A stretch of DNA of 64,000 bases from Salpingoeca rosetta (GCA_033442325.1 JAWQFM010000025.1:424638-488637); one strand, 5' to 3'; counted from the stretch's first letter, positions 5,969-56,198 are shown. Translations and numbers: made by a program. The notes: generated from the letters alone by a model not told the origin.

Positions 5969-7342
5969 ATGGTGGTGCAGATGGCAAAGATGAAGACGAA
6001 CACGCACCCACCACCAACCACGCCGTTCGCACCAACCGCCATCATCACGCACGCTCTGGTAGTGGTGGTGCTTGTTGTTGTGTCATGCTGGAGCGGGCTG
6101 TCACTGGGCGAGGTTGTGCTGGTAGAGGATGAAGCGGGTGCGCTGCATGTGAACACGAGCAATGCGACACTGCAGCCCGTGTTTGTAAACGGCGTGGATG
6201 TTGGCAGGGCCCTGCAGGCGCAGCAGAGCATCATCGAGGCGCAGCACCGCACGTTGGAGGCGCAGCGCACGCGCATCGACGCCCAACGGTCCGCCATCGC
6301 CTCGCTGGCGCACCAAGTGTGCCCTCCGTCCGTCATCGACAGGGACGCGACAGCCGGCAGTCTCACCAGCGACGGCAGCAAGTGGGCCGGCGGCGTCCTC
6401 GCAGACAACGGCCGCATCTACTGCACCCCGTTCTACGCGCCGTCCGTGCTTGTCATCGACCCGGCCACGCGCGCAACGGCCACATTCCCCGTCACAGGGA
6501 TCGCGCCACAGGCCAGCAAATGGGCCAACGGCGTGCTGGGGCCAGGCGGCCGCATCTACGCGTTTCCCGCATCAGCGACGACCGTGCTCATCATCGACCC
6601 GGCCACCAACACCACGGACGTCACCACGCTCGGCGACTTGCCCGCCGGACCACGCAAGTGGGGTGGCGGCGGCGTGCGCGCGCGCAACGGCCTCATCTAC
6701 GGCGTGCCCTTGAAGGCGTCCTCCGTCCTCATCATTGACCCCATCGCCAACACAACCGACACCACCACCATCACGGGCCTCGGCGACAGCGAGTACAAGT
6801 GGTACGGCGCGGCGCTCGCAGACAACGGGCGCATCTACGCCATACCGAGGGCCGCGGTCTCCGTGCTCATCATCGACCCGGCCACCAACACGGCCGACAT
6901 CACCACCATCGCCAACTTGGGGCACTTTGGCGACAACAAGTGGGCCGGTACCGTGCTTGCCGGTAGCGGCAAGATCTACGGCGTGCCCTTGTCAGCGTCA
7001 TCCGTGCTCATTGTGGACGCGGCCACCAACACGGCCGACAACACCACCATCACCCTCTCCAACGCAAACGCAGTGGACCAAGTCTACATGTGGCTGGACG
7101 GCGTGCTGGCGTCCAACGGCCTCATCTTCGGCGTCCCCTTCACCAGCGAAGCCGTGCTCATCATCGACCCATCCACCAACACGGCCGACACCACATCCCT
7201 GCCCGTGAACGAGGGCGCCTTCAAGTGGGCAGGTGGTGTGCTTGTGGACGGTGCTGGTGGTGCTGGTGGTGGTGGTGGTGAGGTGATTTTTGGTGTGCCG
7301 TACAACGAGGAGTTTGTGCTTGCTGTGGATCCCGGGTGTTGA
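5969..7342 (+). CDS. Intronless secreted 7-repeat beta-propeller-like protein with N-terminal GALHxNT/VNGVD motif and coiled-coil stalk (family copy 1)
   Basis: In-frame ATGs at 5969/5981/5990; hydrophobic signal ALVVVVLVVVSCWSGLSLG; GALHVNTS...PVFVNGVDV; heptad Q-rich stalk; seven W-x-G-x-V-L-A-x-N-G-x-I-Y-x-x-P...VLIIDPxTNT repeats; ends DPGC*. Confidence 0.85.
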   Translation: MVVQMAKMKTNTHPPPTTPFAPTAIITHALVVVVLVVVSCWSGLSLGEVVLVEDEAGALHVNTSNATLQPVFVNGVDVGRALQAQQSIIEAQHRTLEAQRTRIDAQRSAIASLAHQVCPPSVIDRDATAGSLTSDGSKWAGGVLADNGRIYCTPFYAPSVLVIDPATRATATFPVTGIAPQASKWANGVLGPGGRIYAFPASATTVLIIDPATNTTDVTTLGDLPAGPRKWGGGGVRARNGLIYGVPLKASSVLIIDPIANTTDTTTITGLGDSEYKWYGAALADNGRIYAIPRAAVSVLIIDPATNTADITTIANLGHFGDNKWAGTVLAGSGKIYGVPLSASSVLIVDAATNTADNTTITLSNANAVDQVYMWLDGVLASNGLIFGVPFTSEAVLIIDPSTNTADTTSLPVNEGAFKWAGGVLVDGAGGAGGGGGEVIFGVPYNEEFVLAVDPGC

Positions 7343-53200: not shown

Positions 53201-56198
53201 CAACAACAGGGGAGGCAATCCCGGCCACGGCAGCACACACTCCGGGTGAAAGCCAGGACAGGACTCCTGCGGAACCTGCTCGAAGTACGCTCCAGACCTT
53301 TGTGGCCGACCATCTCAGAACAGCGCTCAACGCAGGTGATTTGTACTCCTTTGAGTGTGTGTGTGAATAGTGGGTGGCCACCGTTGTTGAACTGAATCAG
53401 TGTATTGGGCGTACCGACTCATACGCGTGTACATTCTCACATCTATGCGTGTGCTCTTGCGTTTGATGATGGCTAGTGCTGCAGAACGCTCGTACAGACA
53501 AGGCAACGAAAGAAGACGCCCCCAGCAAGATCCACCGCTACCGTGACGTTCCACAGGCCTTTCAATCGGATGCTGCGCTGACCGCTCATGAAGCCGTGAA
53601 ACTCACCGCCCAATCAACGCGAAAAGTACTTGCCCGCACCGGTTTCCCCGACATTGCTGTGCGATCGGGGTTGACCGCGATGGTAGCGGCTTCTTTCGTG
53701 GCTGCTGGTATTGGCCTTGTCGCTCTTGGGTCCGTTGGCACAGCATCTCTAGTCGTGATCGAACCAAGTTTCCTGCTCCAGGGAGTTGGCGCAGCTACAG
53801 CTCTGTGCAGCAGTGGGGTGCTGTACACGATTAAGCGGAACCAGATTGAATACCAAAAGAATGTCCAGGTGCTGTGCTTTGCTTTAGTTGACGTGTGTAT
53901 GTGTGCGCACGTTGTTGTAGCTATGCTTGGGTGCTGCTGTTATTGTTGTTACTGCTCTTCTAGCTTTGTTCTTGTTTTTGTTCCTGGTACATGGTGTTTG
54001 CTGGATGCACGTCAAATCTGAATCTCAATTGCCCCTTCACCACCCTCGCTCTTGCTCCATGCATGCGTGCGTGTCTTCCACCCAGCTTATGCTACGACTG
54101 CTGACACTCGACGCGGAGGACGTTCCCAGCGAACCAATGTACTTCGCTGAGAAGGCCATTGTGACCAAGGGTATTGCGCAAAAGATGAAGGCGGTCGTTG
54201 GTCATCCCTTTGAGCCAGCTGACCTCGTCACAGATGACTTTGTTCTGAAGTACTTCTCCAAAGTTCGGTCAGGGGGGCCCTTGTACGACATCAGTGACGA
54301 CGCCACTGCACGCAAACGGGCGCTCATGTTTCTCCGTGACGTTTGGCTGATTTATCGCCTCAGGACCATTCTCGCAGACACGTTCATGTTTGGCATCGTG
54401 GGGACGACAAAGACGGGCAAGGTGTGACATGTACCCTGTTATGGTCGTCAGGCGGTGTCTGTCGTGCTGTTTGCTTGCGTATGTGTGTATGTGTATGTGG
54501 GTGTGGGTGTGTGTATGTGTATGTGGATGTGGGTGTGAGTGTGGGTGTAGGTATGGGTGTAGGTGTCTGAATGTGCGCCTGTCTGCGTGTTCTTGTGTCT
54601 GGTTTAGTGTTCGGCTATCGCTCTCTCAAAGAGTTGCGTTGTGTTCTTATGGTTGTCCTGTGGGCATGACTTTTCGCTGCCATGCAGAGCACGCTTCTGT
54701 CCCGCCTCAACTTCAAGGCCGTTGCAGACTCTGCCATCAACACCATGCGCATTCAATTCCACAAGTGGCCACAGGTCAAGCACATTGTGTTTGTGGATTT
54801 CCCCGGCAACGACGATGTCAATCACGCGGTAAAGATAGACGAGAGAAAGTTGTTGAGGGAAACGGGGTTGGGGGACTTGGTGGGGAGGGCTTCGACGGCG
54901 TGGCGGTGAGAGCCCTGGCAGCATGCGGCGTTGCGTTGATACGATTAATCCTTGCTGTTGGGCGCTTGAATGTGGGCCGCGAGTGTCGCACGTTGTGTGA
55001 CGGCGGCTTGGAGTTGAGTTGCTGATGTTCATTGGAACCTCACGCGTACATGGCAGGTCCGCGACGCGTTTTCTTCCCATTACTCCATCTTGGACGCTTG
55101 TATTTTCGTGGTTGAGGCGGACAAGTCCAACACCATGCGTGTCCAGGAAACCTTCCTCATGGCGCTCAAACACGACGTACGTGCTGCATTGTGAATGCTC
55201 TGTGTGTGTGTGTGTGTGTGTGTGTGTGCGTGCGTGTGTGCTGTGTGTGTGTGTGTGTGTGTGTGTGTGTGTGTGTGTGTGTGTGTGTGTGCGTGAACCT
55301 GCATGTGTGTGTGTGTGTGCGTGAACCTGCGTGTGTGTGAGTACGCACCTTTGACCTTGCGTTGAAGGGAAGAATGTGGACTTGTGCACCAGTTTGTGAA
55401 ACACTGGAGACAATCTTCTTTTCAATTTTGACGCCCCTGCCCAACTCACGCCTTGGAATGCGGAAATGATTTCAGATTCCGGTATTGCTGTGTTTCAACA
55501 AAGCTGATCTTCTTCTCGTGCACACACAAGAAGACAATGACGATCGGGATGGCACCACGCTTTTGCCAGACGATGCGAGGCGTCAGGCGTGCACATCGGC
55601 TGCTGAGCACAGTGATTATGATGATGATGATGGTGCCGCTGATTATGGTGATGGTGGTGACGATGAGGACGATGGGTTCGATGGCTACGATGACTTTCTT
55701 GTTCTTGGCCCATCGGTAAGACTCTGCTTGCCCAGTCAGCGTTGCACTTGGCACAAACATGCGCTATTCATGAACCACCCTTCCCCACGTCTACTCACGC
55801 TGATCGTTGACCACTGTATTGACTGCAATGTTGTCCCCAATCTCAAGACACCCCTTCGTTCCGAGGCCGAGTTGCAGCAGATAATGCAAAAGCGGCTTGA
55901 TGCCCTTCTAGGCGACGGCGGCGCCAAGATGTCTCCCAGTAGCAGCAAGGGGATGCACAGCGTCGAAACGCACTCCTCATCCGAGCAAGTCAGGAAGTTT
56001 GACACGTGCTTCACGTGCTTCACGCGCGAGTTGTCTCGTGCTGTCGAGCCGCAAGACCTACAAGAGCGCGGCATCCTCACACCCGTGGAAGTGTTGAAGC
56101 GGTGGCTCTTCCCCACGCTGAAGCGTTGCAATGTGCCCTTTCGTCAATCCGAACACAAGGCTGTGCTCGAATCCCTGAGGCGGAGGCCTAAACCATAG
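50272..56198 (+). CDS. Class-3 lipase + TM hairpin + P-loop GTPase fusion protein (copy B), 10 exons
   Basis: Exons 50272-50410, 50794-50955, 51113-52782, 53014-53335, 53477-53868, 54086-54421, 54688-54828, 55057-55176, 55476-55715, 55848-56198, with the same intron positions as copy A. CGHSLGG (51604-51618), AFGAPLVGD, DIVPR; GTTKTGK|ST, DFPG, NKAD. Confidence 0.85.

Follow-up and report, generated by a model that had tools for sequence, protein, structure and literature searches.

How choanoflagellates, the closest living relatives of animals, tell self and non-self apart or withstand bacteria and viruses is, to our knowledge, poorly understood. A 64,000-nucleotide stretch of the unicellular choanoflagellate Salpingoeca rosetta (contig C25:424638-488637, hereafter the window, in whose own numbering all positions without a contig name are given) was analysed together with the 55.4-Mb genome. 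The window holds two gene blocks, at 5969-18936 and 37162-56198, in which genes for secreted propellers, leucine-rich repeat (LRR)-like proteins and a class-3 lipase joined to a GTPase (lipase-GTPase) lie together, and which an initial annotation had taken for two copies of one candidate recognition or defence module. The genome-wide data point to a different unit, centred on the LRR-like genes, which adjoin TIR/HET-like-TPR, ROCO (COR) and propeller genes more often than expected by chance.

Gene content of the two blocks

The genes of the window have GT..AG introns, which are rich in (GT)n microsatellites. The assembly contains N gaps at 23021-23120, 25740-26615, 29364-29679, 36620-37037, 40302-40491, 41598-41737 and 44967-45066 (the last one of 100 N), none of which is crossed by a key gene; block 1 is gap-free and RNA contigs give continuous sequence across 48301-54058. 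The following genes were found in block 1:

5969-7342, plus strand: secreted-type propeller; Pfam DUF6923, 28.9 bits (cut-off 27); N-terminal hydrophobic segment
8895-10877, plus strand: gene with a TIR/HET-like N-domain and TPRs; TPR_12 E = 1.5e-63, TPR_10/TPR_12 repeats
11448-13268, minus strand: LRR-like gene, from translation; LRR domain open, conserved N-domain gone
13283-18936, plus strand: gene for a Lipase_3 domain, a transmembrane (TM) hairpin and an Era/EngA-like GTPase; Lipase_3 E = 1.9e-22; P-loop, DFPG, NKAD

All four genes expected in this block from the initial annotation were recovered by Pfam, translation or existing annotation. The gene at 8895-10877 corresponds to the annotated 'Mbre TPR repeat protein' (P0163, 586 aa, 99% identical) and has one intron at ~9381-9569; a 411-aa open reading frame (ORF) at 8148-9383 and its halves matched nothing in Pfam or the Atlas. 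In the lipase gene, the main coding exon (13999-15438) encodes the Lipase_3 domain with its GHSLGG motif and is followed by seven more coding exons, the hydrophobic hairpin, the P-loop, DFPG and NKAD all being encoded in these later exons. Just downstream of this gene lies a 462-bp insertion (19022-19484), a putative MITE-like (miniature inverted-repeat transposable element) insertion, which is considered recent because it is absent from both paralogous copies of the region, at C25:220 kb and C4:572 kb.

Block 2 consists of two propeller/LRR units, each head-to-head, and then the lipase gene:

37162-38565, minus strand: propeller; DUF5074 and DUF6923 matches; signal-peptide-like N-terminus
38934-40163, plus strand: propeller
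40492-41597, minus strand: partial propeller in a 1106-bp piece between N gaps; 100% identical to 45067-46172
42274-44736, plus strand: LRR-like gene b; N-domain identical to that of gene a
45181-46401, minus strand: propeller, head-to-head with LRR-like gene a; seven-blade Vgb/NHL-like fold model; signal peptide by eye
47408-49825, plus strand: LRR-like gene a; N-domain, acidic/polyglutamine (polyQ) linker, LRR solenoid of ~500 aa; RNA depth up to 32
~49968-56198, plus strand: Lipase_3-TM-GTPase gene; two 5' introns, coding sequence from 51193; spliced RNA contig with GT..AG junctions

Three propellers, the two LRR-like genes and the lipase-GTPase gene were thus present as announced for this block, but the fourth 'propeller' (ORF 40606-41541) is probably assembly redundancy, because the piece in which it sits (40492-41597) lies between gaps and matches, at 100% identity, a stretch that itself starts directly after a gap. 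Splicing of the block 2 lipase gene was seen in spliced RNA reads and in a 4264-nt transcript contig, and in three stranded RNA runs both this gene and its LRR neighbour were transcribed from the plus strand. Its GHSLG, GTTKTGKS, DFPG and NKAD motifs are intact, and at least five coding introns, three of them confirmed by RNA, coincide in alignment position and phase between the two lipase genes, as had been noted at the outset.

Other parts of the initial description needed correction. An LRR-like gene does adjoin the lipase-GTPase in both blocks, but the two genes are head-to-head in block 1 and in tandem in block 2. Likewise, that both copies look functional holds for the lipase-GTPase motifs but not for the LRR-like gene of block 1, which has lost its N-domain. 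An additional open frame of 1464 aa, strongly skewed in GC and AT and without a match in Pfam, was detected on the plus strand at 32829-37223; it runs through the N gap 36620-37037, and its size is unreliable.

Neighbourhoods of the LRR-like and lipase-GTPase genes

The genome-wide searches yielded at least 54 LRR-like loci, spread over many contigs, at least 93 scored loci of the secreted propeller family (248 candidates), at least 61 loci with the TIR/HET-like N-domain, 53 matches to the Pfam COR-A (ROCO) model and, for the lipase-GTPase, four close copies plus one distant lipase. Co-localisation was assayed by within-contig shuffles (20000 or 5000) with a 5-kb threshold; the family lists are lower bounds (93 of the 248 propeller candidates were scored) and the contig sizes used in the shuffles were partly estimated. 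The results were as follows:

LRR with TIR/HET: observed 12/54, expected 1.3, ~9x; reached in 0/20000 shuffles
LRR with TIR/HET, window and its duplicate left out: observed 9/49, expected 0.87; 0/20000
LRR with propeller: observed 11/54, expected 2.6-3.1, ~3.6x; 0/20000
LRR with propeller, window and its duplicate left out: observed 8/49, expected 2.1; 15/20000
COR with LRR: observed 5, expected 0.92, ~5.5x; 10/5000
COR with propeller (internal negative control): observed 1, expected 1.3; 3735/5000
TIR/HET with propeller: observed 5, expected 2.0; 253/5000
COR with TIR/HET: observed 3, expected 0.87; 280/5000

The same families are therefore adjacent above chance at independent loci for LRR-like genes with TIR/HET-like, propeller and COR genes, and the excess is centred on the LRR-like family, because the enrichments are concentrated in the pairs that contain it.

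Direct annotation of 20 LRR loci besides the window gave the composition of these neighbourhoods. A trio of propeller, TIR/HET-TPR and LRR genes occurs at five or more loci, among them block 1 and, outside the window, C4:803 kb, C4:326 kb, C34:406 kb and C25:488 kb (loci L014, L015, L016 and L024). Head-to-head propeller/LRR pairs, with ~0.5-1 kb between the genes, were found at six loci. ORFs of the ROCO type with COR-A/COR-B domains are convergent to LRR genes in three cases (L020:465-2405, L022:818-2749 and L027:1050-2816, all on the plus strand), and further COR/LRR cases occur at C36:40774 and C29:888307. Two ORFs of ~660 aa with three TNFR/NGFR cysteine-rich repeats (TNFR_c6, E down to 9e-29), at L017:7126-9090 (plus strand) and L028:940-2943 (minus strand), adjoin LRR-like and TIR/HET-like genes, and a weak TIR_2 ORF was present at one of the annotated LRR loci.

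When the distances among LRR genes were compared with those among their neighbours by Mantel tests, no correlation was detected for the adjacent propellers (r = -0.10, P = 0.66) or for the adjacent TIR/HET genes (r = 0.24, P = 0.13), in a matrix in which a few LRR sequences were poorly extracted; cleaned sequences were used in the later LRR tree. The pairing was therefore kept or re-created with mixed partners. One such case is C4:1690 kb, where an LRR gene belonging to the block 1 clade adjoins a TIR/HET gene from a different clade. A complex prediction for the C-domain of the block 1 LRR protein with residues 20-500 of P0163 gave a score of 0.00 in a run without controls, and counts neither way.

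The lipase-GTPase was not regular in these neighbourhoods. Its four close copies are that of block 1 and those at C25:228 kb (94%), at C4:572 kb (90%) and in block 2 (50-65%); a distant Lipase_3 match (37% identity) at C25:216798-217163, minus strand, is part of a 1121-aa open frame 11 kb from the duplicated lipase-GTPase. One copy belongs to a recent block duplicate, as 7396-24211 of the window is present again, inverted, at C25:220000-238180 with 84-95% nucleotide identity by blastn and with the propeller left out; this segmental duplicate at C25:220-240 kb is at least 17 kb long and runs to the end of the compared sequence. Inside the duplicated span, a 474-aa ORF on the minus strand (19869-21293) has a DDE_3 transposase match of 32 bits (cut-off 28.6). 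The C4 copy corresponds to 13283-19897 only and stands alone, the 10 kb to either side being free of LRR-like, propeller and TIR/HET-like genes. The remaining two, those of blocks 1 and 2, are 35 kb apart in one island, the 430-500 kb stretch of C25, which holds five LRR and six propeller loci; because both blocks lie in this LRR- and propeller-rich island, an LRR neighbour of the lipase is likely by position alone. Also, two lipase-GTPase homologues on longer foreign contigs had no LRR neighbour. The lipase-GTPase is thus probably only an occasional neighbour and not a regular member of a module, and propeller, LRR and lipase-GTPase could not be upheld as a recurring unit on four lipase copies, one of which is alone and another a recent duplicate.

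The divergence between the two blocks also differed for the two neighbouring genes. The dS (synonymous substitutions per synonymous site) between block 1 and block 2 was 0.50-0.72 for the LRR neighbours, compared to 1.4-2.3 for the lipase exon and 1.3-3.3 for the GTPase exons, with the caution that values above 1 are poorly estimated. The LRR dS is well below that of the lipase, so placement or conversion of the LRR genes came later and the pair was not copied as a unit; an origin of the two lipase/LRR pairs from one duplicated unit was rejected for this 2-4-fold difference.

The LRR neighbours of three lipase copies were inspected and two of the three are damaged. In block 1, the N-domain and the start were lost by a 1041-bp deletion at ~13133, as seen by comparison with the 91%-identical paralogue in C25:220-240 kb. 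That paralogue (C25:231700-233250) kept the N-domain, but its LRR domain is interrupted by an in-frame TAA at residue 338. The lipase genes adjoining these two damaged genes remain open. In block 2, the LRR:lipase ratio of RNA depth was ~5, 0.45 and 6 in the three RNA runs, a variation of ~13-fold, so that the levels of the two transcripts do not track each other.

Features of the protein families

The LRR-like proteins have a conserved N-domain (~190 aa), a low-complexity linker and an LRR solenoid of ~20 repeats. Pfam LRR models gave no match to the LRR-like genes of the window in the block 2 Pfam scan, and a family profile built from six members matched internalin LRRs repeat by repeat (E = 2.5e-8). 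In the AlphaFold2 model of gene a, the C-terminal ~500 residues reached mostly 70-95 in predicted local distance difference test (pLDDT), and the top Foldseek matches of the C-domain were all LRR proteins (TLR2, SHOC2, InlA), with E values of 1.7e-3 or weaker. By profile and model, then, the family is one of predicted leucine-rich repeat proteins. No signal peptide was found in them.

The N-domain had no Pfam or PDB match and was poorly modelled. Its protein-language-model neighbours include F-box clusters (0.84-0.85), which is a lead only; the sequence searches for an F-box were negative, as 0/14 members matched Pfam F-box and no F-box chain appeared in the PDB profile search. The layout resembles that of the F-box/LRR (FBXL) receptors of SCF complexes in that a cysteine-rich LRR solenoid comes after a short, conserved helical region at the N-terminus, and differs from it in these same negative F-box results.

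Genes a and b share a near-identical tract of 1.16 kb (41998-43157 and 47133-48291, equal apart from one indel), which covers the promoter-proximal region and the whole N-domain and stops exactly at a polyQ-coding microsatellite. Beyond it the LRR domains are 32% identical, and upstream of the tract the flank shows ~88% identity; the tract looks like a real conversion or recombination tract. Pairwise dN/dS was higher for the LRR domains (~0.35-0.55) than for the lipase (0.15-0.3), which fits a faster, less constrained evolution and is no proof of positive selection.

The N-domain of the TPR gene was modelled with a pLDDT of 90.8. With VIA-align, TIR, ThsB or SEFIR domains made up about half of its 50 best matches, at Z values of 4.5-7, and nucleoside deoxyribosyltransferases and DprA were interspersed among them, where a Z below 8 may mean a common fold only; with Foldseek, plant TIRs came first, at a non-significant E of 0.15 or weaker. 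The motifs of these N-domains, ..SHAW.., ..WFD.F.(I/N)NQ.. and ..RAWCLWE.., resemble HET blocks, and the Glu of WCLWE is near-invariant across the family. None of 24 members matched the Pfam HET (PF06985, at E up to 10) or TIR models, a genome-wide search with the Pfam HET profile gave 0 matches in a run whose control was also empty and which is uninformative, and a PDB profile search with the N-domain alignment returned TPR matches only, from the trailing repeats. A word-based homologue search with the 162-aa N-part gave only two weak metagenome matches. 'TIR/HET-like' is thus a fair description, from motifs and fold, of a family whose TIR or HET membership is putative.

HET homologues are reported from choanoflagellates, together with a remote relationship between HET and TIR (Dyrka et al., 2014; PMC4986451). 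The fungal HET-domain incompatibility and NLR-like proteins (HET-NACHT/NB-ARC-WD/TPR/ANK; PMC4986451) are alike in combining an N-terminal HET/TIR-like domain with TPR_10/TPR_12 repeats of high similarity, in the HET-block-like motifs and in forming a large variable family. In contrast to them, the S. rosetta genes have no NACHT/NB-ARC between N-domain and TPRs, score with Pfam HET in none of the 24 members, belong to a choanoflagellate host and have their LRR-like partner as a separate gene.

The propellers have signal-peptide-like N-termini and matched DUF6923 with 28.9 and 28.8 bits in blocks 1 and 2 (cut-off 27). The Atlas model has a Vgb/NHL-like seven-blade fold (predicted template-modelling score, pTM, 0.78; TM-score 0.74-0.76 to Vgb-family propellers), and the family is thus one of predicted seven-blade beta-propellers of the DUF6923/Vgb-like type.

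The lipase domain scored 80.1 bits in block 1 and 78.0 bits in block 2 with Lipase_3 (PF01764, cut-off 22) and has GHSLG in both, as for class-3 lipases. The block 1 protein is 90% identical to the annotated PTSG_02605 (P0005), in which Pfam detects MMR_HSR1 (35.2 bits, cut-off 21.9) and also GTP_EFTU. G....GKS/T, DFPG and NKAD are present in both blocks, as in Era/EngA-like TRAFAC GTPases, and the GTPase family profile matched EngA/Der/EngB/Era with E down to 2e-22, compared to only 3e-6 for IRG chains. The IRG/GIMAP type, which the initial annotation had named as a parallel, was therefore discarded, as no IIGP or AIG1 Pfam match was found either. An EDS1-family identity was not supported: in P0005, the stretch of 260 residues that follows the lipase domain matched no Pfam family at E up to 5, and an EP domain was not found there. 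The S. rosetta protein shares with EDS1/PAD4/SAG101 the class-3 lipase domain, whereas it has no detected EP domain, keeps the catalytic GHSLG intact and is fused to a TM hairpin and a GTPase. With the immune GTPases (IRG, GIMAP/AIG1, GBP) it shares a P-loop GTPase on a membrane anchor, but its profile is EngA/Der/EngB/Era-like and its Pfam matches are MMR_HSR1 and GTP_EFTU, not IIGP/AIG1.

This architecture is not special to S. rosetta. A Lipase_3 domain followed after ~500 aa by the same GTPase occurred in ~27 of the 150 best lipase matches, with relatives in Cavostelium, Branchiostoma, two rotifers, Basidiobolus, Paulinella and metagenomic contigs. The ENA contig ctg350736 (65.8 kb) encodes at 10001-12712 a 903-aa homologue with Lipase_3 and MMR_HSR1 (P0010); being gene-dense and orphan-rich, with a MutS gene and a weak CHAT match, the contig looks like a giant virus. 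To judge from such matches, the family is patchily spread in eukaryotes and on a giant-virus-like contig, and the layout may move between eukaryotes and their large DNA viruses. A literature search found no account of a Lipase_3-GTPase fusion or of LRR-centred neighbourhoods, which is not proof of novelty; the lipase-GTPase architecture appears undescribed.

Explanations for the LRR-centred neighbourhoods

The explanation that we favour, and hold to be rather probable, is that the recurring unit is an LRR-like hub beside TIR/HET-TPR, ROCO and propeller genes, with the LRR protein as the matched partner of its neighbour and the lipase-GTPase as a bystander. The window would be part of a fast-evolving gene island on C25, and across the genome the cytosolic LRR-like family would form the hub, associated most strongly with TIR/HET-like-TPR genes, and also with ROCO (COR) genes, with propellers, often head-to-head, and at two loci with TNFR-cysteine-rich genes. 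Most likely, an old local duplication set two lipase-GTPase copies in the LRR-rich island, where they came to have LRR neighbours, and a later segmental duplication of at least 17 kb would have copied one of them together with its flank. As a matched subunit, the LRR-like protein may confer specificity on the adjacent gene's product or regulate it, and tight linkage would keep the matched pairs together while both sides diversify, as in plant and fungal immune or incompatibility clusters; by that analogy, the role could be in non-self recognition, defence or cell-death control. In a stronger form, each of the 50+ cytosolic LRR-like proteins, possibly of F-box type, would be genetically paired with the adjacent product and would specifically sense or restrain it, whether this is a secreted propeller, a lipase-GTPase, a ROCO GTPase or a TIR/HET-like-TPR enzyme; this hub-and-spoke arrangement is unlikely to hold as such.

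The clusters and sensor-helper pairs of plant TIR-NLR genes offer a comparable organisation, with diversifying LRR genes linked to TIR-type genes, head-to-head orientation, gene conversion and birth-and-death. Unlike them, the S. rosetta genes have no nucleotide-binding domain, and the LRR part is encoded separately from the TIR-like part; ROCO genes and secreted propellers join in, and no immune phenotype is known.

Several observations weigh against the favoured explanation. Of the four close lipase-GTPase copies, three do lie within 1-2 kb of an LRR-like gene; in the LRR tree, the neighbour from block 2 comes out as sister to the clade that includes the one from block 1, which is the topology of a co-duplication, and the dS contrast involves the poorly estimated range above 1. 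The chance expectation would be higher if the families share variable compartments, and the ratio of 2.5 for TIR/HET with propeller hints at an island effect of similar magnitude. Segmental duplication and ectopic recombination can by themselves maintain adjacency, and the functional coupling is a putative one, read from gene positions.

The main rival is a neutral birth-and-death of lineage-specific families that expand by tandem and segmental duplication and are reshuffled in recombination-prone islands, in which adjacency would be a by-product without functional coupling. The recent segmental duplicates of at least 17 kb and of 6.6 kb fit it, as do the 1.16-kb conversion tract that stops at the polyQ microsatellite, the transposase-like ORF and the 462-bp insertion in the region, the damaged LRR copies, the variable gene order and orientation, and the near-identical single genes at distant loci, such as the propellers of L014 and L015, and those of L016 and L019, which share 99% identity. 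However, the enrichment is specific to LRR-containing pairs, COR with propeller reaching 0.8x of expectation though both families are expanded; partners from different subclades occur in the same adjacency, which needs repeated re-creation or retention, and the head-to-head propeller/LRR pairs ~0.5-1 kb apart recur at six loci. We regard the neutral account as possible but doubtful.

The module as first conceived, with the propeller as extracellular binder, the LRR-like protein as intracellular receptor and the lipase-TM-GTPase as membrane-attacking effector of one defence system duplicated as a unit and kept linked, has in its favour that all three families are present in both blocks with an LRR gene flanking each lipase gene, that the two lipase genes have kept their intron positions along with the lipase and GTPase motifs, that both block 2 genes are expressed and that the LRR tree is compatible with co-duplication. 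It is nevertheless quite improbable, given a C4 copy that stands alone, a recent duplicate that left out the propeller, two damaged LRR partners out of three, a dS 2-4 times lower for the LRR pair than for the lipase pair, a different LRR/lipase orientation in each block, an RNA ratio varying ~13-fold, homologues on two other contigs without an LRR neighbour, and a GTPase that is EngA/Era-like and not IRG or GIMAP; in addition, almost all of the at least 54 LRR and at least 93 propeller loci are without a lipase. Of the clustered sensor-effector system then envisaged, the recurring, non-random neighbourhoods of sensor- and effector-like genes remain, but not the lipase-GTPase, with its four copies, as effector. 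That the repetition in block 2 is largely an artefact of assembling a gap-rich repeat region is scarcely credible. Four N gaps do lie between 36.6 and 45.1 kb (36620-37037, 40302-40491, 41598-41737 and 44967-45066), and the gap-bounded 1106-bp piece is 100% identical to a neighbouring stretch; against this, no gap falls in the key genes (all of block 1, and 47408-56198 in block 2), which are RNA-confirmed, the C-domains of the two LRR genes are only 32% identical, and the flank upstream of their identical tract is ~88% identical, as for true paralogues.

The analysis thus removes a weak claim, since nothing shows membership of the lipase-GTPase in a module, and leaves a broader LRR-centred neighbourhood of immune-type genes, which is supported statistically and to which a defence role may be given by analogy. 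The pairing of LRR-like genes with TIR/HET, ROCO and propeller genes provides concrete gene pairs for knock-out in a tractable model, and suggests that, before or beside the animal lineage, immune-type domains came to be arranged in linked neighbourhoods of sensors and effectors that did without nucleotide-binding modules of the NLR type. If the hub-and-spoke arrangement were true, the closest relatives of animals would have a form of innate immunity, or of allorecognition, built without NLRs.

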